In this document: positions 39,101-61,400 of the stretch, in pieces | How the letters are laid out: the number at the start of each line of letters is the position of its first letter | Numbering within the stretch: position 1 is the first letter of the stretch | Made by a program: the position numbers and the translations under genes | Origin: Ascidiella aspersa | Taxonomy: Eukaryota | Assembly (NCBI GenBank): GCA_963924565.1 | Contig: OZ004610.1 | Location: 9,052,001 to 9,116,000, forward strand | DNA length: 64,000 nucleotides | Direction of reading: 5' to 3' | The notes under the pieces: generated by a model | The model's database searches: none | Seen by the model: the letters and a program-made list of their open reading frames with translations, nothing else | Told to the model about the DNA's origin: nothing

Positions 39101-42100
39101 CATGGATTTCTCGGGTCAAAATAGGGGGTTTGATTGCCTTAGTTAAACTCAAAAAATGTAAAGTACAAATTAAAAACTTAAAATAATTATTTATAATATT
39201 GCAATAAATCTTTGCGGGTCGATTCGGTTAAATTTAAGCTACATCCGTTAAAAACCTCAGTCGTCGTGCCTTGTGTGATGCTGTAATGATAATTTATCCT
39301 GTTTACTCAAATGATAAAACGGCATTTCTGTCACTGACGAAGTGCTCACGCTTTTGTATTTAAAACACTAACCTGAAACCTCATCAAGTGTCTGAGTCGT
39401 GTCGTTTTGTTCGCTTGCAAAATAGTGTGATACGCGCTCGCCCAATGTGCAATAGTTTGTCGGTGTTTATGTGCAAACAAAATGCTACTCTTGGTCTTTT
39501 TATGTAATACCGTATATAGATCTTGAACGATAATGATGCGAGCATATAGACAGGACGTTTATCTTAATGTGAAATACATGATACTTGAAATGACTTGTCA
39601 TCGTATGTTGTAAAATATATTCGACTTAACTGTAGCTCTTCGAAAACGCCAAACTGCTGTTCTTTGAAAAGTTAGTATAAATTTTACCACTTATATAAAG
39701 GGGAGTTGAAACTTTAAGTTTTAGGCTGCTGCGGTTGCTTTTTTTTGCTTGGTGCGGTTGCTTTGAGTTTTTGCCGTGCATGGGTATGACGCAAATTCGT
39801 TAAAATTTGAGAGTTCTGCCAAAATGTAGTGCGAGAATGCATAAGCTTAGCATCGACAGACTTTTTGGCACCCGCCACGATTACGCATCATCGTAACCTT
39901 AGTCATAACTTGTTTTTTTTATAATTTATAGTTCATTGTTCGTTTTGAGCAGCAAGAGTTTCGTTTCTATTCATTTTCGCGGGAGTTGCCAACATTGCAC
40001 TCTTGGCTTTTTTGCATCTATCGCTCAAATATAGCGCATGACTATATGAGCAACAAAATTCAACGCCTTATTAAGAAATCGCAACCCCTGTACCGAAACT
40101 TAAACTTCAAAAGGATTGGTATCGGTGCGAAGGGACAAGTATATACGCTTCTACACTTGTCGTGTAATTAATGTGCGAAGCCACTTGTGTTCGATTACAA
40201 CTGAAAAAAATTTTACTTTTTGCGCGGGAACCTTTTCCCGAACCCTGTAGACCTGTCACTCTGCCAAGGCGTCAAGCCACGGGTTTTTGCGTTTTCAGGC
40301 AATTAATCGGCCGATGCGGGTGTTGCCGTGTTAGCTATTTTTAGACCCGGGTTATTGCGTGGACAAGGCACTTTTATGGCGTAGCGTTTATTCAAGTGTA
40401 TGATGTTTATTTTGCTTGTAGAGATGTGATGTCAAGGGGGTGTGGAAAAATCCGTAGAGGTAGATGACGTCAGTTTTGAGGATAAGATGGGAGTATCTTA
40501 AGTCAGTTGCGCCATTTGTTTGTTGTTTTCTCCTTGTGCGTTTTAACAACATCACCGTCGGCCGCTATTCAGAGTCATCTATTACGGGTGTGGGACGCGG
40601 GTAGATAAGTTCTACAAAGGTGTGTTGTAGGTAGCAATGCTCTGTCGTTTTTCTTAGTTAGGTTCGTTGAAATTGCTGCTTTTTTACAATTTGTTTGTTA
40701 AGGCGATCGAAAGTGCAGCCAGCAGCAAGGAATGATATTCATTTAAAGTCGTTCTGTGTCAAATACTAAGCACAATATTTGCAGAAATGGTGTATTTCGC
40801 TTGCAACAGAGCTCGAGATTTTAACCACTATTGCTTCCTCCGTACGGTGTTCAATTTGAATCTGACTGTTGCGCTTACTCCAGGAACAGAACTTACACTT
40901 TGCGCGACAGTTTACCCTTGGTGAATATATAGCCAGGTCAATTGTCCCTAGGTCGGGGTATTTTGGGCAGCCAGAGAGTTATCAAATATGGATGGAAAAC
41001 AAAACCTATTCTTCTCCTGACTCGGGGTAAAAAAGCCTTTTAATTCTATTCAAGGCAAAGTTACGTATTTTATTCCTATTAGCGTATAATTCAAAGTACT
41101 CTATTTTTATTTTTGCTCTGAAAATTTTTGATTTAATTGTATTATTTTTTTTTCTAATACCATTTTGTTGCACCCGTACTATACTATCGGAATCCCGGTC
41201 CCGACTTCCAGCCGTCGCAGCACGAACTTTTTGCACCTGGAAGATATCAAACGTCACATACCGCCTGTGACGTTGCAATTTCCATGCCAGGAAGCGAAGG
41301 CAAGTGTGCCGGCAAGAAGTCCGCGCATCCGTCGAATACAACCAGCAACCCACGTCATCAGTTCACCCCTTGATTTGTCAAAGGGCAGGTTTCGGGTGGT
41401 CAGTAATGATATTGGGGCGCAAACGCGGAAGGCGAAAACTTTGGTGTCGCATTTTAAGTTGGCAAAGTTTGTCTTAAGGCGAATGCTTTTAACGCATTTG
41501 ATTAATGTTTTTGTATGTAAAAGCAGCTTCTCAGAAAACTAGTTTTGCCTTTGATGTTGAAAGCTAAAGGATTTGTATTCGTTCGTATGGGCCTTTGTGC
41601 GTGAGGATGACTTTTGGTACTGCAATGTGGCTTGGTAGATTGGTTTAGCAGTATTCAACGATTTTCGCCTTGTTTCTAGCAAATGATTTGCCGACGCCCT
41701 TTCGGAGTCACGTAGCAATATCTGTCTGGCTGATGGTTTAATATTGATGAATGCTGTACGCTTTAAGTAGAGTAACGTTTAACAGGCACGTCGCCGTTTT
41801 TGCGTTACATTTTTTATAAATGTGTTAAAACAAAAAATAAAATGAGATAGTTTGCAATTGATTTAACACAAATAATAAAAATGGTAAACTATATAGTGCA
41901 AATGACTAAATCGCAAAGGGAGTTTTTGAATCAGACGCCATATGTTTCATTATGCAGTGAAACGCATTTCTACCAACAAAACGTTACTTCTACCCATAGA
42001 AGTAAATTTCTACCAACAAAACAGAGTATAGTTAGGTATAAGGAATTTTGTTTTAAGAGCGTGTGGCCGTGCATGGTAGCTGTTAATGGCAATAAGAAGT

Positions 42101-45100
42101 ACGCAGTTCGAATTGCTGCAAACATGCGGTGACACTGACCTGTTTTTACGTGTACATTAAATCCGTTTGTTTTGTTAAAAAGTTCAGTTTTGTTTTGTTT
42201 TTACCTGTGTCTAAATATATTTCAAAGTAAGACTTAACCTAATCTACGAATTTCCATAAAACGTTCATGTGTGTCGTCGATTTGGGCAAAGTTTTACTAA
42301 CGCCAGCCAACATTAATTGTTATTGTTTGTTTGTTTGCACAATTGCTCAGACCTCTGAAATACACTTTACCCGCTCTATTGTTAGAGGGGAAGAAAATCA
42401 AATTCAACCAAAGGCGGTGTTTGATTACAAAACAAAACGGGTTTGGGAGAAAAGCAGTTTACCAGCCCGCAAAAAACAAACATTTTATTTCGGAATCTTC
42501 GAAATGAGATAGCCGCCCACAAGGCTGTAAATGAATGGTAGGCCCTATAGTAGATATGCCTCTGCGGTTGTTTTTTGCCCTTGTGTTCTTCAAAACTTAG
42601 TTTTATATCTCAAGGGAGCTTGATTGAATTACGTTTTACTCGAAGCCTCGAACAAAACGCTTCAGCTATATAATAGAGTTGATTTGTGACCATATGAATA
42701 GTTTTAACTCATTTGACAATATGTTTTCAGTCAGTCCTATTATCACACGCAGTGCAAACACGTTTTCAGAAATCAGTTTTTACAAATAAACTTGCAACCC
42801 AGTATAGCAATTATATTTGAACATAATTATGTCACGTCATTTCTGTCTGTGTCGTGCAGTTTTTTTTAACGAAAAGGGACAATTAGATGCAAACAAAAGT
42901 AGCAGATCCATTAGTGCTATAATTTTAACTTTTGTTGATAAAAATATTAACTTGACGACGTGGTAGAATTTCAGTCCATAAAGTGTTGCTGTGTTTAGCT
43001 GTCAAGAGGTATTTTCGTATACAATTTTCAGTCAGTTTATAAAGTTAGCTTTTCGATAGTATTTTAGCCCAGCTTCGAACCGCGTAATTTTGTGCAGAAC
43101 TTTTACTGGTGACTGTGACTATTTCCATTTTCTTGTGGAGTGTATTCTATACCGATTGCGAATTGAATTTATTTAAAAGATTGTGCTGCGGCTAACATTT
43201 TCGCTTCAGTTCTGACATATTTGAGGGGGATTTTTAATATTTTTTTTGTGTTTTATTACCTTGGATAAGAGGCTTTTAATTACCATCTAAGAGACAAAAA
43301 ACATATCTCATTTAACTTCTAAAAGATAGCATAAGTGTCATACATGGCGTGTTTTGTGCCTTATTAATCGAAAACGGCGTCAGTTAAGTTTAGAATTACT
43401 TGAACGTAAAGCAGTTATAGTTGCGCCACTGTGTTTTCTACCAGCGTGGTACATCGAGTTCCAGCATGTCAATGGTTCCCCAAAGGCTTCCATGCAGTCC
43501 CGAAGCGCTGTAAGTTTTCCATGTAGATCAGCGTCGGTTTCTCCATGCCTCTGCCAAGTACAAACCGTAAAGCGTTTGAAAAGCGTGCTACAACCAAGCT
43601 TACCGTATAATCGTGTGCTTTTCGTCAACTAACCGGTCTCGATATTTTTTTGCAACGCTGAACTTGTGACTCTCCAAAAGGGTTGCGTCGAATACAGCGT
43701 TCGGCCAAGTTACGAAGCCATTTAGAAAAACAGTCTTTTTTGCCCACTTTTTGAGTCAGGTGAAGAGTGACGACATAATTCGCCCTTTAGGGTTTGTAAA
43801 AAATATACACAGTTAAAAATGATTATAAACCTCTCCTTTATTTAAAAAATCGCTTTCTCATTTCCGTAGCGTGTTATTTTTCCTGCTTGGCAAACACCTG
43901 TAGCGGCAAGAAAGCTACGCTTCGCGTTGTCGTCAATTGCGACAGGCAGTCGCGATCGGGTTTTCGTGAAAAAAAGGGGCGTGCTCGTCAATATGTAAAA
44001 CGGGTTTGCGACACGCCAATACGATGCTACGCGAAAATAACAAGCGTAAATCAATCGCTATGGCGCAAGGCGAAATAGCTTACGTAGTGAAAGGGAACCT
44101 GGACTGAGTATTTAGGTTTTTGTTAAGGTGAACAAATCGCGAGCACCACTAAACAATTCGTGTAGTATAAATTTGCTGCTTGTGCACTTGCAGAATCAGA
44201 ACTTTGTGTCAATATTTAGAAATGAAGTTGTAAACAGAATGTATAAACTTTGGTAAAGCGCTTAAACTAGAATAAGCTATGTGGATTAAATTGTATTCAT
44301 TTTGTTAGGTTTGGGTAACTTTGTTCGAAAATAATGTTGTATCGGTACTCGTCCTATACTAGAATTGAATCAGTGACGGTCTGAAGGTAAATTAATATGG
44401 GAATTACAGTCATGATTAAAGGAATTACAGCCACGATATTTCTATCTTGAAAATATTTTTTTAATACGGTAGGTTCATAACTGAAGTTAACAAAACTTTT
44501 GACGCGAAGCAAATCTAATTTCCTTGTCTGGGCATAGTAATGACATGATTTTGTATCAGATTGGAATTTTGTCCGAAACATCGGTTATCGATATCTGGAT
44601 AACATGACAAGTATCGGACATCTTTATCGTTCTGTGTATGTTAGGTTTCCAAGTCGGGTACCGGCTTGTGATTCCAGTGCGCAACCCATCTCCGGTTTGT
44701 TTTGATTTTGAACGCACACCTTCTGCCGTTGCCCTTGAATAGCCCCCTTTATGCTGGCCATATCTTGGCTGTACACTGGCTTTATGCTAGCTGTATACTG
44801 TGAAGGCGACGTCGTTGTGTTATTAGCGCATTGTCAACTGATTTATGTTTTTGCGTGTCGGACTTGGCTAGGCAAATTGTTAAAGACTGCAAACGAGATT
44901 TCAACTGCCATGAGCAAAAGCATTGTGCAGCATTGAGCAGCGTTAAGCAGCGTCAGGACAGACCAGCACGTTTGATTGATGCACGCCAGTCCCTAATGAC
45001 TTCAAATCCAATCTGAAGCTAATGCGTAAAGTTCGCGACATTCTAGCGTTTCCATTCAAGCGAGCGCAAGTTTAGATTCAAAATGCAAATTGGACAACCT

Positions 45101-48100
45101 ATTGTAAAGACATCAAACAAAATCAAGACGGGCATGTTTAATTGGAAAGCAGTTCAAAGTAGTTTATAATGTTTCTATATTATAATGCGGGACTTATTCT
45201 GTCGACTAGGTAATTTAAAATAGCCATTGCCAATTATTGAGATCTTGACAAGAAAGTGGTCTACTCAGGGATCTCGTTCTATCGACTGTCTGTTATTGAT
45301 TTTTCCCTTGATCGTTTGAAGTCTACCGCACGCTCAACGCGTCCGACATCCGTGTTAAACGATCGCATCTGCGGAAATATGGCCTTGTAATGCCGTCGGC
45401 TTATCGCGGATTTACGGGATTGCATCTTACGCCGACGTCACATCGTTACCGGGGATTCAAGGCGAAGAACAGTGACGCTAAGCGATAGCCTTGGTTATTT
45501 TTAAAGCCGTTTTTTATTTAGCTATATATAAGAGTAACGAAACAAAAGAAACTCAACAAAGTGCGCTAAACTAAAAACCCGCTTGATGCGATCATACGTT
45601 GGACGTAAAGCAGTTGTATATTTATGTAAAGCTATATAATGTGTTTGTCGCTGGGACAAAGTGTGACTGTTTGCAGCAGCCAGAGTTGAAGCTCCACGAG
45701 GGCCTTCTTTACTTGATGGTCTAAAATTCGCTTTAGCTTTTCTTTTTCACACTGTTTTGACTATGGTTTTGTGACTTTAAAAGTGTACTTGATTACCTCC
45801 ATTCGGGCGTCCGTTTTAGATCCCATTTTGCGACATGTTACCAACGTGATTCTCGAAACATGTTGACGGGTACGAAATCACCTAATTTCATTTATTTGTA
45901 TTCACATACATAAAGGGCTGACTGCTTGTCCTTACAACTCGTGCTTTTCTTGGCTCGCAGCGAATCAATAAGTTGACTTTCGCGCGTCCTATCGAGATTC
46001 CCGGAAGCCGAGTTCGAAACTCACCGCGCCCAGTTCTCGTTCGCAAGGCGGTGTCGGAGATTTACCGTGATATTCAGTTGACACCGCTTGCCGGACGTTG
46101 CTCGTTTAACTGGTAATCTGTTGTTTTTTCGCGCCGCAGCTTATCACGAATGCGAAGTCGCACCGGTATTTAGGCCCCGACCCGTGGTGAGAAGTTGCCG
46201 TCCTGTTTGCTGGCTGCTGGCCTTTCGGTCACGGAAGAGCTTGTTTGCGTGTTTTGTCTTGCTGTGCAAAGGTTGCGCACAACTTTTGGCGGTACAAAAG
46301 GACATTAGTGCGTGCAACCCAACAGCGTTGAAACTACAGCGTATTTTTAGTTTTTGCGCCTCGGCAGTTAATGTGGCATTTGTATTTTAAAGGGTAAATG
46401 CAACCTTGCTAAATAGAAAATGTTTGCGAAGAAAATTGTTATTCTGTATTCAGGATTGCAAACTCAACGAAAAATATGCAGATTGTTTGTTTGAAGTAAA
46501 ACCTAGTTACCATAGCCTGTGAAAATTATAGGTTCCTGTTTTGTCGCGATTAATATGGTTCTTACCAACGGATGAGCTATATAAGATTGAGTTATCACAG
46601 TGCAGAAGTGCAGGGTGAAGAGGTGGCTGTTGTGCGTCACTGCTCGATATTTTACCGCGCAGTTCTTAACAAAGTACTCAACTCGTTTTTATCTCTATGG
46701 GAAAATACCTACGCTTTTTATTGTGCAGCACTTTACATGGTGGAAAGAAGGTAACTATAGCTGCAATGATATTCAATAACAAACAGGGTGGTATATTTTG
46801 ATCAATTGGCTTAAATACACCGTTTCAAATTTTAATATAAAAACTCGATAAAGTTTTGCGAAGTTTATAGAAGCATTGGTTGGGAAGTAAGCCAGCTAAG
46901 ATTTCCATCCATGAAGTCATGTTAACTGCGTTTGGCAACTGATTTCAGTCGCTCTGAGTCCCCGTTAATGGCATTACAGCAGGACGGGTGGCATAAAATT
47001 ACTTTGACCGCTGTCGGGTCGTAAACTGGCTGGCTGGCTGCGAGGGCTTAACTGCCAGGTGCCCTTCTGTAGATCGGGCGCTTTTAGAGGTATTACAAAC
47101 GATAAGATGACGCGGGCAATTCAATTCCGTGAGCTCGCAAAAGTTTGCCGTCCGTGTCTGGCCTCTTTCGAGGTAAACCATTGCCGAGTGGTGCCTTATC
47201 TTTGCCCAGAGACGCCGCCGCCCAGCAATTCGGAAGCCAGTCCACGTTATACCAGGCGCTGCTGCTGTTTTATTTTGTAATGTGCTATACGCACAGCCTT
47301 TACCAGCAGTTTTACCGCCACGTTCCGCAATAATGGAACGCGGTGAAAACGTTTGATCTAACGCAGTAGGGACGCAGCGTTTAATATCTTTCAAAGTCGT
47401 GACAGTGACAGTGACCAGGAGGCCAGGCGGCGTTCCTTGATAGTTTTTTTTTGCCTGCTGAGGCAAAGCTACCGTTTTCTTCTATGCAATTGAAGGTCGT
47501 GAAAGACAATATACATTAACGTCGTTAGAAGATGGTTCCTATTATGCCTTCGTTGCCTAGCAGTTTCGTCAAGCAAGTTACGTCACAGGTGGTAAGCAAG
47601 AGATTTACAAGTATGTCTTAGACCGCGCAACCTTACCAAAGCGATTAGGGCAGGAAATGAACGTACCTAGCTATAGCTCTTTTTTGTTCAGAAGGGTTAA
47701 ATAAATATTTTTAGTCCCACAAGATGACGCGATGAAACCAGCCAGATATAGATTAACAGTGTTGTGATTCAGAGCTGGTAAACACCAAATAAGCATTAGC
47801 CGGTCTGACTTCCCAGTCATGTCACTTAAAAGTAAAAAAACGCCCTAAAACACAAAAGACAATTCTGGCGTCAACGGGTTTACTGCCCCAATGACCAAAT
47901 TTGCCAAACGGATCTTAGGCAAAAGTTTTCAGTTTACCCACCGTGTAGTAATAATATGATCGATTGCTTGCAAAAATATTTCGCGCCCAACATGTTTTAC
48001 GAGGCATGGTTAATGACGTCATTGCAATTTGCGTTTTTTGGCGTCGTGTTGACAATGCCTGCCAAAGAAAGACGGCGTTTTCGAAATTAGCACTTAGACG

Positions 48101-51100
48101 TGTTCAGTTTTCTCTGAAATTCTGAAAGCGACCCAACGATACAATTTAGGTTATGAGGCGCCATTCTACTCAAAAAGTAATTTTGGGGTCGATTTCTGCC
48201 CAAATAAAGGTCGCATACAGATTCGGAACATTGCACGGGTGTTTTTTTTGTTTTGAGATTCCAACAGTCTCGATTTTTTATACCAGTGCAGTAATTTTTC
48301 AACAGTTTTTTTCGTTACGCGGTGCCTTACAGGAGCCAGTCACTGATGATCCGATAAAGACAGGAAAAAATGTCCTGTCCTGAACCCAAGGCTTTCCGGT
48401 TCGCGGCCCATTACGCGCCGGTGCGTTCATTTATTAGCGTCGTGCCGACGCAACCCAATATTTTGATTCGCGCGCATTTTGCCTTGCGACGGCATCAGTT
48501 GGCCTCATGGTTGCTGGAATTTTAATTCGGTCTCTTTATTAATGGCGGACAATTTTGCCACCCTGGAAATGTGCATGACAACAGAGCGAGAACAGCTTGT
48601 AAGGATTGTCTCAACAAGTAGAAAAAGTCATGAGTTTTAAAAGAAAGACTGACGTTTTTTTCTCAGAAGTTGGCCTAGCGCCTTACCGAGTCCATGATTT
48701 AGCAAGTTAGTTGCTGAGCCGCTTTGGGGCTTTGCGGGTACGCTGAGGCAACTTTCCGGGCCAAATAGAATTTGGAATTTGTGGAGGCGTGTTTGCAGTT
48801 GGCGCGTTGCGAGAGATTCGCGTTTTTCAGTTAGTTGGTCTGTGGCTCTGCGCTTAACACTAAACTAATAGGCATTCCAAGCGCGACGCAAGCCAGGTGT
48901 ATAGGAGCGCAGCACGACACGTGCGGAATTTGCATCAAACTGTAAGCCCAAATGTCGAGTTATGTAATTTGAAACGTGCGATTGAGTAAAAGGGTGAAAG
49001 GAATTGGCCGGCTAGTCTGTTTGGCGAGGTTCAATGAGTGTTTCAGGCTCCGGTAAATAGGAAGTTTTGTATACAAGAGCTTCGGTAGCAATACGAATGC
49101 CATGTTTTGTTAGTGAACAGTCTTAGTGTTCGGGGTGCACGTTTTGCTTGGGTTGTAACCAATGCAGGTGTTATTAGAGTTGTATAGGTGTATTTCCTTG
49201 TAATATTTCACCAAAGTCGTGACAGTGACAGTGACAGTGGTCAGTCGGTTTTCCTTGATAGCTGTTTGCCTGTTGAGGCAAAGTTATCGCCTTTTTGGCA
49301 ATTGAAGGCCGTGAAAGACATTATATATTGCCGTTGCTAGAAGATGGTTCCTATTATGCCTTCATTGCCTAGCAGTTTCGTCCAGCAAGTTACAACACAG
49401 GTGGTAAACAGGAGATTTTACAAGTATAGCTAAAAGTAATGACTTAAACGGCTCAGGTAAATAAGAGGTTTTGTATACTAGCGCTTCTGTAGCAATACTA
49501 ACCCATGTTGTGTTATTGAACAGTTGTAGAGTTCGGTACACGTGTGGCTGGGGTTGTAACCAATTAAGGTGTTACTAGAGTTGTATACGTGTATTTCCTT
49601 ATTTCATTTTACCTATATATTGGTGTTTTTTAGTTTGTGAAATCAAAACATTTATTACTTTTTGCTTGGGTACTTTTAGTGGCAAATTTTGAAAGGGCAT
49701 AAACAAGAAGAGAATTGGTCATTTTAGTAGGAACTAAATTGAAATGGCTTACACACTTCGGTTTGTTGCCAATAACAATTTGAATCGTGCAATGTATTAA
49801 GACTCAGTTGGCGAGTTTCCACCGTGAATTGCCATGGAGAGATGGGAGTCGGGCATCTTTATATGTGTATCACTTTTTTGGTCCGCCGCTAAAATACGTT
49901 CTTAGCGAGTCATAATTACCATACAAGGCCTCGTGTTATGACTATATGTGTGTGGATGGTTGCATTAGTTTACTCATGTTGTTCTAGTTCGGGATTTTTC
50001 TTGGAAAATTCTAACACTTGTTTTGTTTCATTTTGCAGTGTTAGTCTGTTGATAAACTGCATAGGCAAATTTCGCTTCGTACTAAAACCGTAAAAGCATC
50101 GCGACAATTACGCAATAAAGGTAAGTATAGCTACAACCAACTGGTCATAAAATATCTGCTGTTACATCTCTAACTTTAACGCTGACGCAACCGCACAATA
50201 ACAATTTACCCTCGCACTTGTTGTTTTACGTCGCACTTAGGAGAAACTCCCCTAAAATTGTTGTGAAACTTTGTACGAGGCGAATCGCCCGTTCGGGTGT
50301 GCACAGCACCCAGATGACGCCATGACGTAAACGGGCTTTATTATGACGTCACGCACCGCTGAGCCGCTTACCTTTGTGACGCAGGAATCGACGGCAGTCG
50401 TACGACGTCAACGGATCGTCGCCGAACAACAAGAAGAAGTTCCTTCAGAAGGCCGCCGGATTTTTCGACAAGTAAGCGCTCGGTTGTATAGCGGGGTGAC
50501 CTCGAGTAACCCCCGGTTTCGTCTCAGCGGCGGCCGTTGACCCGATTCGGCCCCCTGTAGATATGGGGAAAGGAATGTTTGCGAAATGTGAGGTAATGTC
50601 GCCCGTGTTTCCAACTTGTTGTCGGTCGATTGCGAAGAGCGCGCTCAACCACACACACACAGACATAACTTGGGTTTGCCCCGGAGCGATTCGGGCACGT
50701 ACACCCTAAGTTCGCGGTATTCGTGACGCGTTGGAAATTATTCCAATGCCCGCTTTTTTTCATATTATTGGTTTATGTCATAAGCCAAATACTAATTACG
50801 CTTAGTGCTCCTATATTAGCTGATCGGTCGCGTATTTCTGCGCCACTTCCGGACAAAGTGTCTGCCTTGTTTTAAACATGCATATTCATAGGAACACATC
50901 GGCACGCGGCTCGCGACGGTCAGTGTTTTTAAAGCAAAGCCGGAAACGTCAGATATAGCATCACTCGGTTTTAAGTCCATCTGTCTCACACGTCAAACGA
51001 GGACTCCGCCATGACAGCCTTGCGCACTTTGGCATACATGATTCACAGTTGTCCTGAAAAATAAATCAAATACGCCCACTGTGGCTCGATCAGGTGCGAT

Positions 51101-54100
51101 TTTCCACCTTTAGTCCAATCCTGTCAAAATAAATCCAAGGTTCCCTTCAGACCTTTAACTGATGCTCGTGTCGTTTGGGTCGCTTTTTATCACGCTACGC
51201 AAGCTAACTAAACTTTGTTTCAGGCACAGTTGTGAACATCAAAATTGTTGTTACCCGGGAACAGTAATTTTTGACATATCCTTTAATGTGCTTTTTACCG
51301 AAATAAAGGGGGCAGTAGTTTCCTGATGACATCTATATAATATAGGGTATAACTTTCAACTTTTAGGGCCTCAAGTACATAAAATGTCACTGCTAGCTTT
51401 ATATAATACAAAAGAACGGACACGTCGATAAACGTCTTAGATAACATATTCACAGTATTGTTCTAATTGCTTGCAATCAAAATTCGATGTTTAGATTGTA
51501 AGATGGATATGGCAATATTAGAGAAGGCTTCTCGTGGCTATTACCCTTGAAGGTGAACGCTGGAAGTAAAAAAGGTTTTAGTCGGTGCTCGGACTTACAC
51601 ATGTACGTACGGGCGCCGAGTTCGCCCTGGAGATTCCTCGATTTGTCAATAAGAGCACACACTATTGATTCCCAGGCGACCGACAGTGCACTCTCGACGA
51701 GCATGTTTTTACACTTGGGCACCGAGGAAGCAGCTTGTCTGACCTGCCTCGATAATTATCGGCTGCTTTGCGTTTGACGAAATCTACCCTTTACAGTCGG
51801 ACGGCCCACAAGTTCGTTACAATATCACGAAGGCCTTGTAAAAGCCTTAGCTTGCGGGTGCTTGTACGTAAATGCCTTACCCTTTTAATAGTGTTAAAGA
51901 TGCGCTGATTGTACGTTGAAGAGTCGTAATATTGGACAAAAGATTGTGTTTTTAATAAACGGCTTTTTGCACATCAGCGACTGAAATCAGTCACTTTTGT
52001 ATTCACGCTGGTCAACGTCGACGCCCCTCGATCAAATGGAGCACTACACATCCTTTAAAATGACACATCTTTTGAAATTCAAGAAAATTGTCAAAAGGTC
52101 AAAATTTCACATTCTTAGTGATACTTAATGTGCGGCCGATGATTGTGGGAAGAACAAACGAACCGAAAACCCGCAGATCCCCCGACGTGCGTGGTTTAGG
52201 CATACAAAGCTCCAGCATATGTCCACGAGCAGAGAGCCTTAGTTCATTCACCAGGAAGGTCATACTCTGGCCACCAAAAGAGCTTCTCGAAAATTTCCGA
52301 ACTGTCGCTCAACTTTAGAATCACTTGCTGATCAAGACGTATTTTGACGCGCATATTGATTTCGCTCGGGTTCGCAGCAGGGCAATCTTCTCTGTTGCTG
52401 TCAATTAAAACCTAGAAGATAGAGCAGAGCGAGCTTGTAGCCACAATAGGAGGAACCATATTTCTGCCGACCTGCCTTTAACTCCCCAGCGGCCTGCGCC
52501 CTTTCCAAATATACCTTTTTGGCGGGTGTAAGTTTGCGCTTGGTTACTACATTTTTTGGCGGTGCTTTGACTTGCCAAGTTCGCCAGACGTCGTAAAAAC
52601 AGCAGCGATCCGTTCCCACCAGGGCGCGAACTCACCAGGGGTCGGGACTCTGTCGTCACCGACTAGTTGGTGGGAATTCTTGGAAAATTAAAATCAGGCC
52701 GAAAAAGTCGCGAACGACAGCGATTTACTACACTCTTTGTTTTTCTATAAGAAAATAGAATTTTTTCCAGAACGCAAAATTTTATGTTTAAAGTCTGTCG
52801 TCAACGACGAGTTGGTTAGAATTTTTGGAAAATAAAAATAAAGCAACAAATCAAAATCTGAATTGATTCACGCTGTTTAGTTTTTCATAAGAAAATATAA
52901 ATTTTTCAAAAACGCAAAATTTGGTAAATTTTATGTTTAAAGTCTGTGGTCACCGACTTGTTGGTTAGATTTCTTAAAAAATAAAAAATAAAGCAACAAA
53001 TCTAAAGCTAAATAGATCGACGCTGTATAGTCTCCCATAAGAAAATGGAATTGTTACAAAACTGCAGTATTTGTGGATTATACGCTATAGGTGCTTGGGG
53101 CCGCCTTTCTCAAGAAGTTCAAACGCGTTTGCTTTTTTCAATGGACTTCACTCGCGTTTCCGTAGGCGGCCACGCGTTTTACGTCACATCCCTCTGCAAC
53201 TGTATAAACTTGAGTGGCGGCTGATGCACTGCGACACACGTCGAGAATTTATTTTCACCGCATGAAAGTTTAACGGAGAAGGTTCCGATTTGGTCTACGG
53301 TTATTTTGTGTTGCCGTTTAAGCCCACAGTGTTGTGTGTGTATTGCGTCAGGTGACGTGGGCTAGGCGTGCGTTAAAAAGCTTGCAGGTGTGACTCACAA
53401 CGCCGTGCAACTGGGTGACAAAGAATCCTGGATCTTTCAATCTAGCAATTGCGCAGCAGTTATGCACTGTCGGTCACCGTTTTAGATTTATGCTTTCTTG
53501 AGCGAACCGCCTATGCACAGAACTGTAGGATCACAAGCTAAATACGAATGCTTTCAGAGTTGCAGAGGTTGTCGAAGGGGCCAGGTTATGTCGAATACAT
53601 GCAACGCGTGGGCTGAGGTTTTTTGCGAACACAAAATGTATTACCTTGTTTGACAGGAGACCTAAAATGAGAAAAGGTTAGCTGTAAGTTTCTTCGGCCG
53701 TATAGGTTGCTGGAAATATCTGGCTCTGGTGTGTGCTTTATCGTGTTATTTTTTACAGTTGAACGCTCTTACTGTACAGGTGACTTCGTTAAGCCGGATT
53801 TTAAAACTATAGGTTCTTGTCTATGTGAAGCGAATCGGCTAAAGTTTGTCCTTCCCTTTTTGCGTTGTTTCCGATTATTGGACTTTTTGAAAGGCAGTCA
53901 CTGTGAATAAGTCTTCGCCACCCGAAAATCAGTTGAAACATGGCGGCGAAGAAAGCGACGAGGCTGGTCGCGCGTTCCTTTGACGACGGCGATTCGCACG
54001 TCAATCAACTGGAGGCCGAGGTGCTGGGCCTTCGCAGCCGCTTCGACAAGCTGGAGCATCAGACCGAGATACGACTGGGCAACATCGAGACCGCCATTTC

Positions 54101-57100
54101 CCAGCTACAGAAATCCACCGACGACAGCAGCAGCATTGGCGGCGTTGAAAAAACGGCCAGTTCTGGACTAGGCTTGCGCAAACAGGCCAGCGTCGCCTCG
54201 TCAACCGGTTCCTTCCGGGTGAATCTGGAATCAGTGAGCGACGCGGGCGAATTGACCGAGACCGACAGTGTGTCGCTGACTTCCAACGACCTGGCGCCGC
54301 CGGACAGCGCCTTCCTGGTGGTGACCGGCATCGAAATGGACAAGTCAGGTTCCGAGGACCAGTATGAGACTGAAAAGGCGCTTAAACTCTTCCTGCGCGA
54401 ATCGCTTGGCATGAGCTGGGAAGAGATCCGTTCCATGGCGATCATCGACTGCTGGCGGCTGCACGCAAGTGGAGAAACGAAGCGCAAAGGCCACGGCAAG
54501 GGAAGCAGCAGTGTCCCGATCGTCGTGCGTTTCGAGACGCTGAGCGACGCAGAGCTGGTGAAGTCACGAGCTCCGGTCGCAAAGATCCAGGGCTTTAACA
54601 TCACCGAGTTGCCGCCGCCGTACCATCAGCAGCAGCGCGGGTCGCTGAACACCCTTCAATCGCAAGAAAGCCCAGAACGCAACAAGCGAATCAAGAAGCT
54701 GAAGTCTGAGGGAATGGGGTTAGTTCGGCTCTGCTCAGTCGGGCGCCAGGGCCGCATTAGTATAGCATTAGGTTTGTGTTAAGGGACACCTGGCTTTGAG
54801 GGCTTCGTTGGTTCCCATTTTTATTTAAATGTTGACGACAATTCAAAAGAACCTTATTGTAGGTTCTCTCAGCTAATTTTACCGCTGTTGTAACCACAAC
54901 ATACCGGGCTAATTTTGCTCTTATTAAGATTGGATAATGTCGCTTATTTAGTGGCCGTACAACCGGTCTGTGACACTAAAATAATTTAAAGAAATTGCTT
55001 CTTTCTGAGTCCACGCCGATTTGGGACACGGTTGCCGTTATGGTTTTATGGTCGGAATAGACAATATAAGGACGCGCTGGTTGTGTGTGTTTGCCTGAGT
55101 CATCTGTGTCGCAACTTCTCGATTTGCCACGCTAGGAACGGCCTAGGTCGCCATGCTATCTTCCTCTCAAAATAAAGCACACAACAGCCTTATGACGATG
55201 TACGTATGTTGTTTACATTTGGCCCGGTGCGCAACGCCAAACAAATTCCACCTGTGAGCCAACGCTCCCGGCCTGCATTTAGTTAAGTTACTAGAAAGCA
55301 GCGTCCAGTGACGTTTAATGAATTGTGCCGGCGTAAACAAGCATCTCGGTTCGCTTCCGTTATGCCCGGTGCGTCATTCTACGTGTTGTTAGACACCCGA
55401 AGATCTTAAAAACCCGCGCTTGCGTTGGTGCGATTTGTTTTACACTGTCAAACAAAACCGTTAATATATATAATATATCGTTGACAACCTGAAAAATGTG
55501 TCGCAATTCTGTATAGAAACTCATATTCCTATAGGGCGGTGGTTTTATACATTTTAAATTGTTAAGAAGACTGACCCTTGTAATTTTGTATTGTTAAACG
55601 ATATTTGCAAAAAACAACACAAAAGATCACTACAACAATATTTTAATTAACCGAAACCAAAATAAAACAACTTTTTGGAGGTTAATGAGATAGTGTAATG
55701 CCTTTGCTTAAGTTATTTTGTCAATTTTTAATTGATTTGTTAAAAAAAAGGAACTATTTCGGTTTCGTTTATTTAAATCTTAAGAATTCCTGAAAAAAAT
55801 ATGACGCGCTTTGTTTTATTATTTTGAGCTGAAACAGTCGAACGCATTATACCTCAAACGATGATTTATTTGTAAAATATTACATCATTGGGAGCATGAA
55901 GTATATGCTCTGGTCAACAGCTACATGTTTTCTGCTCGGCTGAGCGCCAAGCACGCTGGGGAAGGTTATGATGTCACATCACGTCGCCATGTCTATTACG
56001 TCATGGGCGAAAATTGCCGCTACGAAGCCACTATTATTGCGCAGCGTCGTCACCCCACAATAAAACAAAACATTTAAATGTCATTAGGCCTTTGATTAAA
56101 TATCATTCGCCTCAGTTGCGTCATATATGTAACAATTTTCGGTAACAAAAAAGGGGCAAAAAAAAAAACAGACTTGTATTGCCCTGGTACAGTGGTTCTC
56201 AACCGGGGTGCCGCACTCTGGGGTTCCATTTTTAACGCCCAAGGGTGCCCAGAGATATTTCAAATTCTCTAGGATTTCAATTTTTGCTCTATTTGTAAGC
56301 TTCTTTATACAATTTTTTGTTCCGATAAAAATGCCAAAAATTAAAACGTTTGTTTCAACCTTGTTGCACAGTTGATGTTTTAATCTCTTTATTGTAACGT
56401 TACAGTTAACCACTCATGTGAACAAGGTTGCCGTGAGCTATTTATAATTTCTGTAGGGTGCCGCAAGCCAAAAAAGGTTGCGAAACACTGCCCTAGTATT
56501 TCGTTTTGTCATGTTAATAATTACCCTTAATACGCTTTAAACCGAAGCACACATCCACAGTACTAATTTCAATTTCATATCAAAAGATGACTGTCTCATA
56601 ACGCTCTGCGGCCGATATCACTGTTTGCAAACACGACAAAAATTCGTTTTTTTTTTCGCACAGGAGCGACATCTTGCGAAGACTTTCACCTGACCGCAGG
56701 AGGTCGCCAAAGACCAGCACAGAGAATCTGAGTGAAACTGCCAGTAAGTCTCGTCTGCTGCAGATTTGCCAAGCAATATGATAATTGATAAGGATATTTC
56801 AATATATTCACCTATAATATACCAATAGTTTTGATTAGGGATGTTCGATAATATCGGCCTGCATCCGATGCCCGATACCAAGTGCTCCGATACTAAGAGT
56901 GGTATTATTGCGAAATAAAGTTGTGCTTTATCCTTGGTTTTCTATCTTAATGTTTTAATTGTAAATGAAAGGTAAGTAATCTTTATACCGTTAAAGGAAT
57001 TTTTACCTAATTACCACGGAGAAAACTGTCTTTTTAGATTCGATTTTAGAAATTTCGCCTTTTGGACCCAAGTGATACCCCGTACTTTTTGTTTCAAATG

Positions 57101-58457
57101 TCATGTATCAACATCGGAATCAACTCAAGTATCGCAAATCCTTAGCTTTTACCAAATCTCCGGAGTCCAATCCGAGTCGAGCATTTGGCTTGCTGCCTTT
57201 GCTTTTAATTACCGTGTTAACCAAACCAGTTGTGTGTTAACGAAACCTGTTGTGTGTTAACCAAACCTGTTGTGTGTTAACCAAACCAGTTGTGTGTTAA
57301 CCAAACCTGTTGTGTGTTAACCAAACCAGTTATGTTTAACCAACCAGTTATGTTTAACCAAACCAGTTATGTTTAACCAAACCAGTTATGTTTAACCAAA
57401 CCAGTTGTGTCAACCAAACCAGTTGTGTTGCAATAAGTTTACCATCCAACCACTACCAAGAGCACTTGGTGATATACTAACGGAACCGCCTTACGCTCTA
57501 TATGGCACGCAACTATATATATTCATTATACGGACAAATTTCAAATCTCGCTTTATATTTCAGCTTCGCCTTCCGAATCAACGATGTCGGTGGACGGTGT
57601 TACCACGTCAACACCGTCGTCCAACCAGTTTGTGCGCAACTTTCTGCGCAAGAGCTATCATTATGACGTCACGGACGAGAAAGCGAGCCAATCGGACGAA
57701 AAGTGCGTATCCGCTGTTTATAATATAAAACAAATTATCCTTTCCAAAAAAGGTTTCATTTGGTAGTATTTATTCGAATAACAAGTGGATGTCACATACT
57801 GAAGCATTGATCCCCCATTTACTGAGTTTCGAAAGTTTTAAAAGTTGAGATATTTCGGTTACTATAGATTTAAAAAAACGAATCGAAAAATTGCAATACC
57901 GATGAATATATTGTTAAAAATAAAAAGTAAAAATGTCAATTTTTTTGAAAGACGTAAAATACAACACTTCCTTTCATAATTAATTAACAATCTAAGACCT
58001 AGCAGTTAAGATTCACTGGTTCTTCTTGTGCTGTGTTTCTCAACCTTATACATGGTTCTGTAGTTTTGTGTCTCCTATTCACGTGTGATGATTGTTCCAC
58101 GGAACGCCACCAAAAAGTTGTATAAAGTCCCAATGAACACCACAAACACTTTTTTAAATGGCGAATAATTAAAACACTATATTTTCGTGGCCCAAAACAG
58201 CCACCAAGAATATGAACGGGGCCCCTGTTGAGAAACCCTCTGTTCAAGTATATTATAGAGTTTCTGTACTTCAATCTATCATATTAGGAAGTATAGCGTT
58301 GGGGTAACATTCTGACGAGATAATTGTGAATTTTCAGGGACAAGACCAAGTCTCTGAGCAAGTTCTCACCACGTCGGAGTTTGAAGAGGCTCAAGAAGAA
58401 GCAGTCGGGAGCGGCGCTTGGAGGAGACTTGAAGGAGTCGCAGCTAACTCACACGCG
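27131..58457 (+). CDS. 5' part of a large multi-exon gene of unknown identity; low-complexity basic Ser/Thr-rich N-terminus, continues beyond the window
   Basis: In-phase GT-AG exon chain: 27131-27245 (MERANRPGKILVTKQNSRENFNELVHYWKSKSPTPTTP, ends phase 1), 28802-28975 (1>1), 29743-29843 (1>0), 30747-31092 (0>1), 37654-37860 (1>1), 38694-38850 (1>2), 58338-58457 (2>2, DKTKSLSKFSPRRSLKRLKKK). About 406 codons with no stop; exons are more GC-rich than their introns. No recognisable folded domain in the window. Confidence 0.75.
31048..31330 (+). repeat. Tandem duplication of an exon 3' end plus its splice-donor region
   Basis: ccgcttgttcag(c/t)agcagc...ttgtttttctaattgta...aaaataggtaa.cttgagaag.gtgctgttatt occurs at about 31048-31185 and 31189-31330. 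Confidence 0.85.
41212..41388 (+). CDS. Candidate cassette or alternative exon of the plus-strand gene
   Basis: Acceptor ttccag at 41211; 177 nt open in phase 2>2 (RRSTNFLHLEDIKRHIPPVTLQFPCQ...SSPLDLSK) ending at CAG|GTTTCG. Phase fits between the exons ending 38850 and starting 58338. Confidence 0.35.
47392..49600 (+). repeat. Dispersed local duplications arranged B' ... A-B-A'
   Basis: A ~220 bp unit B (caaagtcgtgacagtgacagtgac...agatggttcctattatgccttc...tttacaagtat) occurs at 47392-47614 and 49212-49427. A ~150 bp unit A (ggctc.ggtaaata...gtgtatttcctt) occurs at 49046-49199 and 49450-49600. Confidence 0.9.
50039..50120 (+). other. Probable non-coding (5' UTR) exon
   Basis: Strong acceptor ttttgtttcattttgcag and donor AAG|GTAAGT flank 82 nt that contain no ATG; lies upstream of the 53759 acceptor. 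Confidence 0.5.
52648..53060 (+). repeat. Three tandem copies of a ~148 bp unit
   Basis: tctgt(c/g)gtca(c/a)cgac...gttggt...aaaat...ataagaaaat occurs at about 52648, 52793 and 52942. Confidence 0.85.
53940..54718 (+). CDS. LINE ORF1p-like protein (coiled coil plus RRM, Transposase_22/L1TD1-like); probable alternative first coding exon of the host gene. The unspliced ORF runs to 54782.
   Basis: Acceptor ttttttacag at 53758 and good ATG context (aaacATGG). Heptad coil VNQLEAEVLGLRSRFDKLEHQTEIRLGNIETAISQLQK is followed by LVVTGIE...ETEKALKLFLRESLGM...IIDCWRL...PIVVRF...DAELVKSRA...GFNITELPP...QQR, the motif order of the LINE ORF1 RRM. Donor GG|GTTAGT at 54718 is phase 2, matching the acceptor at 58338. 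Confidence 0.75.
56190..56490. mobile_element. hAT/Charlie-like MITE, 301 bp
   Basis: TIRs cagtggttctcaacc and ggttgcgaaacactg; 8-bp TSD ccctggta / ccctagta (7/8 match). Confidence 0.88.
56965..57702 (+). CDS. Alternative N-terminal exons of the plus-strand gene (56965-56971 and 57564-57702)
   Basis: ATGAAAG|GTAAGT (phase 1) joins tttcag|CTTCG... to give MKASPSESTMSVDGVTTSTPSSNQFVRNFLRKSYHYDVTDEKASQSDE, ending AA|GTGCGT in phase 2, compatible with 58338. The 57564 exon is well supported; its upstream partner is less certain. Confidence 0.6.
57214..57430 (+). repeat. Minisatellite, about 11 copies of a 19-20 bp unit
   Basis: gtgttaaccaaacc(a/t)gttgt repeats grade into gtttaaccaaaccagttat; units are head-to-tail with no spacers. 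Confidence 0.95.
58031..58242. mobile_element. Degenerate hAT/Charlie-like MITE
   Basis: Ends ctgtgtttctcaacc and gttgagaaaccct form an imperfect inverted repeat; no clear TSD. Confidence 0.5.
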
Positions 58458-61400
58458 GTAAGTTGCTGGGTATGTTTCGTCCCGAGTCCGACTCCAGTCA
58501 AATGGGCCGAATCCGGCCCTGACTCTACAGCATGTATATCACTAAGTTACAAAACTAAAATAACGGTTGGAAAATATTCCACTATATGGTATTTCACTTT
58601 TACAATTTTCAGTTGGAAGCCATATCAGTTTTGAAAACGTGGTCTTACTCGAGTCCTGAGACCGAATTCACCTCCGCAGGCCTAGTTCTTAGATGTTTTT
58701 TCACCGCTGACCCATAAAAATGATTTTTTTAGTTCTTATGGTCGGCATGCAATTTTCAGAGATGACGCCATAAATTAACGTCATAAAACCAGTGGACTTA
58801 GAAACCGCCTGTTTTCGGACCAAGAAATTAAAACTGAAATGAAGGCGCCAAAGCGTTTATCTGCTATATGGAACTGGCATATTAGCCGGGTATTTTAGTT
58901 GGGGCCGCAAACATCTTTTCGACATAAGACCATAGAGGAACGTGATAGCCATGGGACATTTCTTGCTCTGAGTCTAAAGGAAAGTTTATGTTGTTAAATG
59001 AATATTCAGGTCGTGTTTATTATATAACCTCCTTATTTACCAACTGCGGCAATAGAAGACAAAAGAAAGGATTTTACGCTTCTCGACCTTACTTCTAAAG
59101 ACGTGACTTGAAATCAGTCTCGCTTTCTAAGCCTTTATCAGTGTCTTGCACATCCATGAGCACTCTTTATACGCCACGCACTGTCTTATTTATGCTGTTT
59201 AACAAAACAAAAAACGTAGTTCTACACGTTTGCTCTACATGCGTGCAAACCTAAACTTGCATGCCTGGTTAGCATTTGCAAAGGTCAACAGCGTAAAAAG
59301 CACTTCCATTGGAAGTAAACTGACAGGCAGTGCTTTTGACTGACATAAGGTAACGGGGCCTCCCGGGCAGCGACGGACCCGCGGCCCATGTTGGTTCGCC
59401 ATCTGTCGCGCTCGCAAAGCGTCCCCGTTTTGACGTTCGCCATCACGTCAGTCATAATCATCTGCCCCTGAATAAAGCACGTGACTTTGTCTGCCACGTT
59501 CCGGCTACTGACGTTCAAAGCGACCAGGGTGCTCTCGCGGAAGGAGTCGGGGAATTTCTCTGTCTGCACGTAGAGCAACCTGTAATTTCCAGCTGACGAC
59601 GCTTTCCGGTCTGGATATTGGAGTTGTGATTGTCGTAGGAAGTGCTTGTTGACGCTGGAATGGACTGGTACGGTAGCTGCAAGTTGCTATTAAAAGCGTG
59701 GAGCAGCGCTGCGTCGGTTTCGGCCCGTATATAACTCGCCATACGCATCGAGAAAACTTAGATGTGTTTGCGTAGGAATGGAGTTTTGGTCAGCTGTGAA
59801 TTGCAGCTTTCTCTTTATGTAGATTGAGAGGCCGATCCACAAGGCTGAGACAGCTTAGGGTTCAAACATAGGTCGCTTAGGGTTCAAACAGGGAGTTGGT
59901 TTAAACGGTTCCAATTTTCACAATTTGTGTCGTTGTGTAAGCAGCTCTGTCCGGAATGCTACATTAGTTTTGAGCTTTCCACGGGATAGGAAGCCTATCT
60001 AAACACGCCTCGCCCTGAGAGGGATTGTATGCAAATTAGACTTCCATCTGTCTGGAATGAATTCAATCGACCGGTTAAAATTAGGGAATTGTAAGAACGG
60101 TTAAAATAAACTCAGTAATGATTCAATTAGTTTAGCGATATATTCTAAAATTCAGAAGAAAGCTTTGTCCGGCAAGCGAACGCTATGCACTTAGGTTTGT
60201 TTTTATCGCCGTCGACCCATTTGACGCTACTGTTGCTTGGCTTAACGTTTTATTCAAGATCTGCTGGTTCAGGTCGTTCCCGGCCCCGGGGACGCGTGTT
60301 TGTTTAAAGCCAACGTGTTGTGTTGATTTGGCAGTAAACGGCGCGTTTGATTGGCGCTTCCGTGGGAAAGGCGCCCTAATGGGAAATTTATGCCGTTTAC
60401 GCGGCTCGCCTGTGCAGCGGGCTTCGACAAAGCGCTAAAGATAACAAGCCAAAAGCGGGAATGCTCGTTTTGATGCCTGGGCCCGTTTCTGTGCCGAATT
60501 TATGCTTAAGGCGATTTGGTTTGTTGCTGTGATGCTGACGCAAGGGTGGTGACAGTGCAAAAGTACCAGTTTGGATATAAAAATTGGGGTTCCTTTGTGC
60601 GCCGACCAGAATACCCGAATTTATATTTCTCGAATTACAGAAATTTTGAAGCTTTAAAAAGTTGTGGGTTTATATTGCTCGCTGTATACCGAAACGAACT
60701 AAAGCGACATCAGTTCGCTTTGACTTCAATTCGGGGCAAGTTTTTCCCATTAGCCTTGCTTTCATTCGCCTGATAACATGAAAGCTGCCGAATTGACTCC
60801 CACCCATAAAAACAGTGGGAGATAGAGCAAAGCGTCCGTCCGCAATAAAACGCGCTTAACGCAGACGCGGGGAGATATGAAGATAATGGCTGCTGGCTGG
60901 TTGGTTGGTTGGTCGACAGAGCCGCAGAGACAGACTCGGTTTTCAATGGAATTCAGACAGCGCCCCTCGCATAATAGAGTCAGCTGTGGCTCTTATGTAG
61001 CTCCCCACCAGTTTCCGTTCCTAGACAATGGAAATTAGGAAAGCGGTGAAGAGAGGTGGGCTCGCGTCCATTCGCTTCGTAGGGCTTTTAAAATCGTTTT
61101 TATATTTCGTATGTGCGTATCTGCTGTGCATCAGGCGTCGCGACGTCGCTCTGAGCGAGTGATGTCATAGCTTTTTAGGCGCATAAATGGATTTTAGAGC
61201 GGTTAATGTGCGGCATTTCGGTGTTTGTCTGGTTCGGATCCTGTCGTGTACTTGCGCAACACAAAATCATCTGGTTAAGTAAGTCGCGGTGGCGCCCACC
61301 TTTAGTGGCCATTGTGCTCATGCAAATCATTTCCGCGATTATATATAAATGAACAAACGACCCGCATAAAATGATTAGCATATGGCTCATATTCTGTTTA

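Follow-up and report, generated by a model that had tools for sequence, protein, structure and literature searches.

In the present study a stretch of 64,000 nucleotides from the ascidian Ascidiella aspersa (assembly GCA_963924565.1, contig OZ004610.1, positions 9,052,001 to 9,116,000 of the forward strand; hereafter the window) was analyzed with regard to one exon, at 53759-54718, which encodes a coiled coil (CC) followed by a domain resembling an RNA recognition motif (RRM). With a probability of roughly 0.65 it is a conserved, single-copy first coding exon, the CC-RRM part of which derives from the first open reading frame (ORF1) of a long interspersed nuclear element (LINE) and is spliced into a multi-exon gene of the ascidian. 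Probably this is a new case, outside vertebrates, in which a host protein has acquired its N-terminal part from a transposon protein. The evidence comprises the conservation and splice phase of the exon, its synteny with exons of a second species, and comparisons of structure and of sequence profiles with the LINE protein ORF1p. Positions are those of the window unless prefixed with L (locus) or G000 (genome contig), and the features are collected in Table 1.

Structure and conservation of the exon

An earlier note, made from the sequence alone, had described an intact open reading frame (ORF) rich in GC at third codon positions (GC3), and such a frame is present on the plus strand (GC3 0.73, regional GC about 42%). 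Likely exons in the neighbourhood show GC3 values of 0.6-0.8, hence composition marks coding sequence here and bears no foreign signature. The acceptor that had been proposed at 53758 is seen as an AG behind a pyrimidine run (tttttacAG), 181 nt 5' of the ATG, and because an in-frame TGA lies between the two, the exon must provide its own start codon, which is kept in all homologues in the alignment. At the other end, the proposed phase-2 donor falls into the codon of Gly260 (54717-54719), a residue that is invariant and the final conserved position in all seven homologue clusters described below, and the donor of the homologous exon in a second species has the same phase. As similarity among the homologues stops at Gly260, the donor at 54718 is backed by comparison across lineages, beyond its motif alone.

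The homologues were retrieved by HMMER from 1.84 billion representative proteins, among which only seven true clusters were found (E 9e-30 to 1.5e-7, 36-44% identity); no ORF1p was among these matches to the exon product, and word-indexed homologue searches yielded no further relatives. The homologues are unnamed proteins of 214-316 amino acids (aa) from ENA, JGI or Logan assemblies, and they share one layout: behind the starting Met come a conserved coil and a variable Ser-rich stretch, then a conserved domain, which is followed by a KKxKK patch and Gly. Past Gly260 their tails are unrelated to one another or the sequence stops at once: P0001, P0002 and P0010 end at the equivalent position, and in L003, where the intron starts with GTAG, the stop is supplied immediately. 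L003 and L004 are two JGI metagenome contigs which carry P0001 and were used as the second species. Such tails are expected where gene callers read through a phase-2 GG/GT donor (the slash marks the splice site) into the intron.

Past the donor no stop codon is met for 20 codons, and an AATAAA lies near 55165. Both would suit a gene of its own, without introns and coding for 280 aa, which would be nested in an intron or part of an operon, left unspliced and translated to the stop codon at 54780-54782, in a genome that uses operons and trans-splicing. The end of conservation at Gly260 in seven clusters, three of whose members finish there while other tails are unrelated, and the syntenic downstream exons with compatible phases in two species speak against such a gene, which we consider very unlikely.

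The whole 308-Mb assembly was searched at protein, DNA and profile level and only this locus was found, as the earlier note had expected of a domesticated sequence. Its statement that no ORF2, endonuclease or reverse transcriptase (RT) follows also held: the following 3 kb (54760-57725) contain ten ORFs of at least 45 aa, for none of which Pfam gave a match, so that RT and endonuclease are undetectable downstream, and in L003 the intron after the exon, being about 600 nt long, is too short for an ORF2.

Selection was measured by the Nei-Gojobori method between the window and L003. The proportion of synonymous differences (pS) is saturated at about 0.75, and that of nonsynonymous differences (pN) amounts to 0.26 in the RRM-like domain (60 of 104 residues identical), 0.46 in the coil (13 of 37), 0.55 in the linker between them (10 of 49) and 0.11 in the downstream exon A (22 of 26). 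Such a pattern is typical of a protein maintained over a long time, in which a free linker separates two structured parts. The ORF is intact in all seven clusters and the RRM-like domain is constrained at saturated pS; together with colinear exons in L003 and L004 this bears out the purifying selection and synteny that had been proposed as checks.

These data bear on the reading that an ordinary LINE copy, 5'-truncated or decaying, lies in the intron by chance. Its ORF1p-like architecture would suit such a copy, yet the sequence is single copy and intact, has orthologues in several lineages of deep divergence and is constrained at saturated pS, no ORF2 remnant is present, and the next conserved exon of L003 follows about 600 bases downstream. 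An ordinary LINE copy is refuted by copy number and conservation and retains next to no probability. The exon does not encode the ORF1p of an active element and fits a domesticated ORF1p fusion exon.

Coiled coil, linker and RRM-like domain

Models were obtained with AlphaFold2 from an alignment of 11 sequences; single-sequence AlphaFold was usable for the helix only. The long N-terminal helix contains R34-F-D-K-L-E39, which fits the pattern R-h-x-x-h-E, presumably the trimerisation motif of ORF1p. With three copies of residues 12-70, self-association scored 0.77 (best of three controls 0.01), and the resulting model is parallel and in register, with at least 93% of contacts agreeing between runs and a predicted local distance difference test (pLDDT) value of at least 80 at the partner chains. 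According to these models helix 17-65 is predicted to form a parallel coiled coil, and it may self-associate.

The RRM-like domain was modelled with pLDDT 84-94 except for the beta2-beta3 loop (residues 177-188, pLDDT below 50). In a Foldseek search against the PDB, ranks 1-3 were taken by the RRM of human L1 ORF1p (2ldy, 2w7a; E 7e-4 to 1.1e-3), followed by generic ferredoxin-like folds (E at least 5e-3). VIA-align, applied as a second look, placed L1 ORF1p in all top five positions (Z 9.8-8.9, root mean square deviation 2.6-4.5 Å, 84-95 residues aligned), the best RRM from another protein having Z 7.5. In an independent VIA-align run over 48,161 representative chains, Z of 8 or more was reached only by 2w7a (9.8), 2ldy (9.4) and 2yko (8.3), with the next chain at 6.8. 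In the model, residues 120-227 are an RRM of the ORF1p subtype standing behind a coil as in ORF1p, in line with the coiled coil and ORF1p-type RRM claimed before; every motif quoted then was found in the ORF.

Human LINE-1 ORF1p (2w7a, 2ldy, 2yko/2ykp/2ykq) is hence the best structural match, covering residues 122-225 (Z 9.8-8.3; 93 of the 99 residues of 2w7a_B), and has likewise an N-terminal parallel coil and a long basic beta2-beta3 loop. It differs in that identity is only 16-18%, and in that the ascidian exon has a long disordered linker between coil and RRM and lacks a Pfam match and the C-terminal domain (CTD). Canonical cellular RRMs (CELF, FOX, eIF3b) have the same beta-alpha-beta-beta-alpha-beta fold, but reach no more than Z 7.5 as compared with 9.8 for ORF1p and have no coiled coil before the domain; the exon gave no match to the Pfam family RRM_1.

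The absence of the CTD, most of which the earlier note had described as replaced by the splice donor, is seen in residues 228-260 being disordered and in the exon ending thereafter; neither PF25298 nor PF17490 was matched, and comparison of the RRM with the CTD segment of LINE ORF1 gave P 0.15. By analogy with Lyosin (see below) this suggests that RNA binding would be altered.

Relationship to LINE ORF1

PF25298 has at least eight matches in this genome. In the LINEs of L014 and L015, ORF1 encodes 238-270 aa with a coiled coil, an RRM with the motif 'YSRRECLEIRG...' and a C-terminal PF25298, so that the Pfam second domain of baculovirus FP ('Baculo_FP_2nd') plays the role of the ORF1p CTD in these elements. 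In both elements (L014:727-2271, minus strand, at G000:C6:31.65 Mb; L015:356-2175, minus strand, at C7:14.09 Mb) an ORF starting with an APE-type endonuclease stands directly behind ORF1. At least 217 relatives of this ORF1 family were found at E ≤ 0.001, among others in cnidarians and insects.

When the profile of the exon family (A2) was aligned with that of the LINE ORF1 family (A3) by hhalign, a probability of 89.9% was obtained (E 1.7e-6) over 204 colinear columns of coil and RRM. With the RRM columns only, P was 1.5e-5 to 4.2e-5 and RRM lay on RRM in register, whereas reversed-sequence controls gave P 0.14-0.82 and the RRM against coil or CTD pieces of ORF1 gave 0.15-0.36; the coil alone reached P 0.005-0.025. 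The invariant Gly130 of the exon family was aligned with the invariant Gly112 of the LINE family, and the VRF strand with the VKF strand. Structure, compared with human L1, and profile, compared with a LINE ORF1 resident in this genome, are two independent lines by which the domain is tied to LINE ORF1p, and from these we infer a transposon origin.

Several results weigh against this origin. The earlier note had expected a match to Transposase_22, yet in hmmscan searches with the ORF and its seven homologues no family of Pfam (PF02994, PF03258 and PF25298 included) or NCBIfam was reported up to the limit of E ≤ 10; sequence and profile searches of the PDB returned no ORF1p among their matches, and BLASTP of the exon product against the LINE ORF1 of this genome found no similarity (best E 4.7). 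The exon alignment is shallow (effective number of sequences 2.5), the RRM-only comparison in hhalign reaches a probability of just 70-80%, and descent cannot be proved from likeness in fold to an RRM subtype alone. As for the coil, 21 of 30 proteins known as same-chain pairs from solved structures passed the mark of the test, and none of 23 solved as single chains did, but the test was calibrated on two copies, a pass may reflect memory, and dimer and trimer are indistinguishable by it. Other searches were neutral: a protein atlas gave sub-threshold leads to PF25298 (0.84-0.86) and PF02994 (0.82), a BFVD fold search returned nothing clear (25K FP at rank 48, E 0.03), and failure to detect PF02994 in the genome is uninformative, control genomes being negative as well.

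The exon could accordingly be read as a lineage-specific invention of the host, or as an old cellular RRM, whose likeness to ORF1p is convergent or due to LINEs having captured a host domain. In addition to the missing sequence matches, such an origin would agree with RRMs being very common, with many canonical ones reaching Z 6-7.5, and with the exon being flanked by no remnants of transposable elements. Nevertheless, among 48,161 chains those above Z 8 are from ORF1p only, about 3 Z above cellular RRMs, and the profile match is specific to the RRM segment of ORF1 and absent from reversed and off-domain controls. Furthermore, the order of coil and RRM is that of ORF1p, the coding block is a single intron-less exon of 779 nt among exons of 80-207 nt, and the exon family occurs in few lineages, as opposed to the many relatives of the ORF1 family across animals. 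A host origin is thus rather unlikely, and descent from a LINE ORF1 is preferred.

Exons downstream and the host gene

By tblastx and blastn, four colinear pieces of the window, corresponding to the ORF exon and to exons A, B and C downstream of it, were matched in L003/L004, the latter three exons having identical boundaries and phases in the window and L003. With its own ATG, a conserved phase-2 donor and three syntenic exons in two species, 53759-54718 has by comparison the properties of a first coding exon. Of the junction from 54718 to 58338 that the earlier note had proposed, the frame proved right: exons A and B together measure 219 nt, so that the donor is in frame with exon C as well as with exon A. 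As the next exon, however, 58338 is improbable, since the conserved exons A and B precede it and would be skipped. Judged by conservation and phase, 54718 is most likely spliced to exon A, then to B and C.

Exons A, B and C, the candidate upstream exons U1 and U2 and the open piece at 30744-31160, each translated and searched singly rather than as one spliced protein, gave no Pfam family. Just past the window end and 12 kb downstream, an exon at L005:2656-2782 (G000:C4:9118656-9118782) codes for the first half of a LIM domain, matched to PF00412 below the cut-off (E 0.0019). This exon has a phase-2 acceptor that would fit the donor of exon C; a search over 27 kb revealed no second half, and the nearest PDB matches were unspecific. 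Motifs of exons A and C may resemble the N-terminus of EPLIN/LIMA1.

The 5' end: alternative or sole N-terminus

A 16-nt sequence, which we take to be the ascidian spliced leader (SL), was counted 623 times in the genome as against 0-1 times for its reversed control, and because of this number the genome is assigned to an SL trans-splicing tunicate. The occurrences include tandem 584-bp arrays at G000:C3:5242219-5294152, probably genes for SL RNA. The leader also stands about 50-80 nt 5' of the ORF1 ATG in at least two copies of LINEs (L017:711-726 and L013:850-865, at G000:C1:21690699 and C1:20832861), which suggests that these elements retrotransposed from trans-spliced transcripts and carried the leader at their 5' end.

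The acceptor of the exon may serve trans-splicing; just as readily, it could be joined in cis to the candidate exon 50039-50120 or to an exon that ends at 50471. The first of these, put forward earlier as an untranslated exon, does have splice sites of consensus type, and each of its three frames contains stops. In the GC-rich stretch that follows, a cluster of TGACGTCA palindromes resembling the cAMP response element (CRE) at 50300-50420 precedes a 43-codon ATG frame, which ends at the donor 50471/50472; cluster and frame could be an internal promoter with a first exon or an upstream ORF.

Whether the exon provides one of two N-termini or the only one depends on the exons further upstream. 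U1 and U2 join in frame, and the phase-2 donor of U2 at 38850 is in frame with exon A; this phase match is the sole evidence for a canonical isoform, and the chance of such agreement is one in three. Within 38851-53758 neither a strongly coding segment on the plus strand nor a paralogous exon resembling A, B or C was found. A short motif is shared by the piece at 30744-31160 (SPFVRN) and exon B (QFVRNFLRK; NPFVRSFLRK in L003), possibly as an internal repeat, which would make the upstream exons part of this gene. From the splice phases, the pattern is compatible with a host intron of 17.8 kb that holds an internal promoter and the ORF1p-like exon, and we put the existence of a second, canonical N-terminus at about even odds.

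To the contrary, the exon may be the sole first coding exon of a constitutive ORF1p-host fusion, transcribed from a promoter at about 50.2-50.7 kb or completed by SL trans-splicing at 53758, the exons at 30.7-38.9 kb then belonging to another gene. The TGA at 53934 and the ATG kept in all homologues are in favour of this, as translation starts in the exon, and so are the GC-rich stretch with CRE-like palindromes 3 kb upstream, the lack of any conserved exon in the 5 kb upstream of the ORF exon in L003/L004, and the fact that U1 and U2 are tied to exon A by phase alone. It is opposed by the in-frame donor of U2, by the interval without strongly coding plus-strand segments or paralogous exons, by the recurrence of the FVRN motif and by the vertebrate precedents, which are alternative isoforms (PMC12129022). 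We give this possibility slightly less than an even chance.

Table 1. Positions of the ORF exon, its encoded segments, candidate upstream parts and downstream exons, with matches in metagenome contig L003 (a slash marks a splice site).
Feature	Position	Strand	Remarks
ORF	53940-54782	+	intact, 280 aa, own ATG
5' untranslated part of exon	53759-53939	+	after acceptor AG 53757-53758; contains in-frame TGA 53934-53936
Coding part of exon	53940-54718	+	Met1 to first two bases of Gly260 codon; donor GG/GTTAGT, phase 2
Intron start GTTAGT and non-conserved read-through tail to stop	54719-54782	+	probably untranslated
Long helix, residues 17-65	53988-54134	+	unbroken 3-4 heptad core (V21, L24, V28, L31, F35, L38 ... 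L56)
Ser-rich disordered linker, residues 66-119	54135-54296	+	poorly conserved (pN 0.55)
ORF1p-type RRM (predicted), residues 120-227	54297-54620	+	beta-alpha-beta-beta-alpha-beta, basic beta2-beta3 loop
Disordered tail, residues 228-260	54621-54718	+	conserved basic KKxKK patch; no CTD
Candidate non-coding 5' exon	50039-50120	+	consensus AG and AAAG/GTAAGT; stops in three frames
GC-rich stretch with TGACGTCA palindromes	50200-50700	+	donor CAA/GTAAGC 50471/50472; candidate promoter or first exon
GC3-rich open piece	30744-31160	+	upstream of U1
Candidate upstream host exon U1	37654-37860	+	phase 1 in, 1 out; GC3 0.60
Candidate upstream host exon U2	38694-38850	+	phase-2 donor GC/GTGAGT, in frame with 56664
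Exon A	56664-56743	+	phase 2 in, 1 out; conserved in L003
Exon B	57564-57702	+	phase 1 in, 2 out; FVRNFLRK motif
Exon C ('shared host exon' of the earlier note)	58338-58457	+	phase 2 in, 2 out; SPRRSLKRLKKKQ motif
Match of ORF exon in L003	L003 5576-5869
Match of 56650-56736 in L003	L003 6545-6631
Match of 57545-57709 in L003	L003 7784-7948
Match of 58336-58404 in L003	L003 8441-8509

Comparison with known ORF1p fusions

First or last coding exons derived from ORF1p and fused to host genes have been reported from vertebrates as Lyosin, L1-RFX5, NUP42-L1 and USP4-L1 (Kitao, Ichiyanagi and Nakagawa 2025, PMC12129022). Lyosin (L1 ORF1p-MYL4) is without CTD, overlaps no annotated repeat and has a preferentially conserved RRM, and altered binding after loss of the CTD has been argued for it (PMC12129022). 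The ascidian exon is like Lyosin and L1-RFX5 in that a CC-RRM in one first coding exon is joined to host exons, with no remnant of a repeat or of ORF2, and like Lyosin in the missing CTD and in an RRM preferentially conserved under purifying selection. Apart from occurring in an ascidian and not in vertebrates, it differs in several respects: BLAST-type similarity, the criterion of the published screen, is absent here, the likeness being one of fold and of profile against profile only; the nearest LINE family is of the PF03258/PF25298 type and not L1; a Ser-rich linker of 54 residues separates coil and RRM; and its spliced product is derived from comparison. In the literature no report of an ORF1p fusion exon in ascidians was found.

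The ORF1 of the PF03258/PF25298 ('Baculo_FP'-type) LINEs of this genome (L014:1462-2271, minus strand; L015; L017) likewise has a coil and then an RRM, but it keeps PF25298, carries a basic YSRRE ahead of beta1 and lacks the Ser-rich linker; it occurs in multiple copies, with an APE-endonuclease ORF behind it. L1TD1 is comparable as a domesticated host protein derived from ORF1p, and carries duplicated RRM-CTD units.

The most likely history of the ascidian exon is as follows. The ORF1 of a retrotransposon lacking long terminal repeats would have been inserted in sense orientation and exonised long ago, and ORF2, the CTD and all other copies would have been lost afterwards. By analogy with Lyosin and L1-RFX5, the exon would give the host protein, or one isoform of it, a coiled coil of about 45 residues for self-association and an RRM with a surface at which RNA or proteins could be bound. 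A great age is indicated because synonymous sites are saturated between lineages and the seven clusters share less than 50% identity. In a more specific version, which is tentative and as a whole doubtful, this would be the first ORF1p-host fusion outside vertebrates, very old and from a non-L1 LINE with a Baculo_FP-type ORF1, the isoform perhaps arising without a promoter of its own, in that the SL is trans-spliced to acceptor 53758 within an intron of a longer host pre-mRNA; its product would have an oligomerising head of RNA-binding type on a disordered basic scaffold, possibly with a LIM domain.

Protein-coding exons derived from LINEs are few, namely L1TD1 and four fusion isoforms that were reported from vertebrates in 2025; each of these derives from L1 and was found by sequence similarity. 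If the reading as a domesticated LINE ORF1 is true, the phenomenon also occurs in tunicates and with a further family of LINE ORF1, and such exons persist until only likeness of fold or profile remains, in which case screens based on similarity undercount them. Ascidian embryos allow isoform-specific knock-outs and would thus be a tractable system for the role of a CTD-less coiled-coil-RRM in a host protein.

Further open frames

On the minus strand, an open frame of 133 aa (59288-59686, GC3 0.65, no Pfam family) lies in the intron after exon C and may represent an antisense exon or gene nested there. About 25 kb past the window, an ATG-initiated, Ser-rich and GC3-rich frame of 353 aa is found on the plus strand (L006:5485-6543, corresponding to G000:C4:9141485-9142543).

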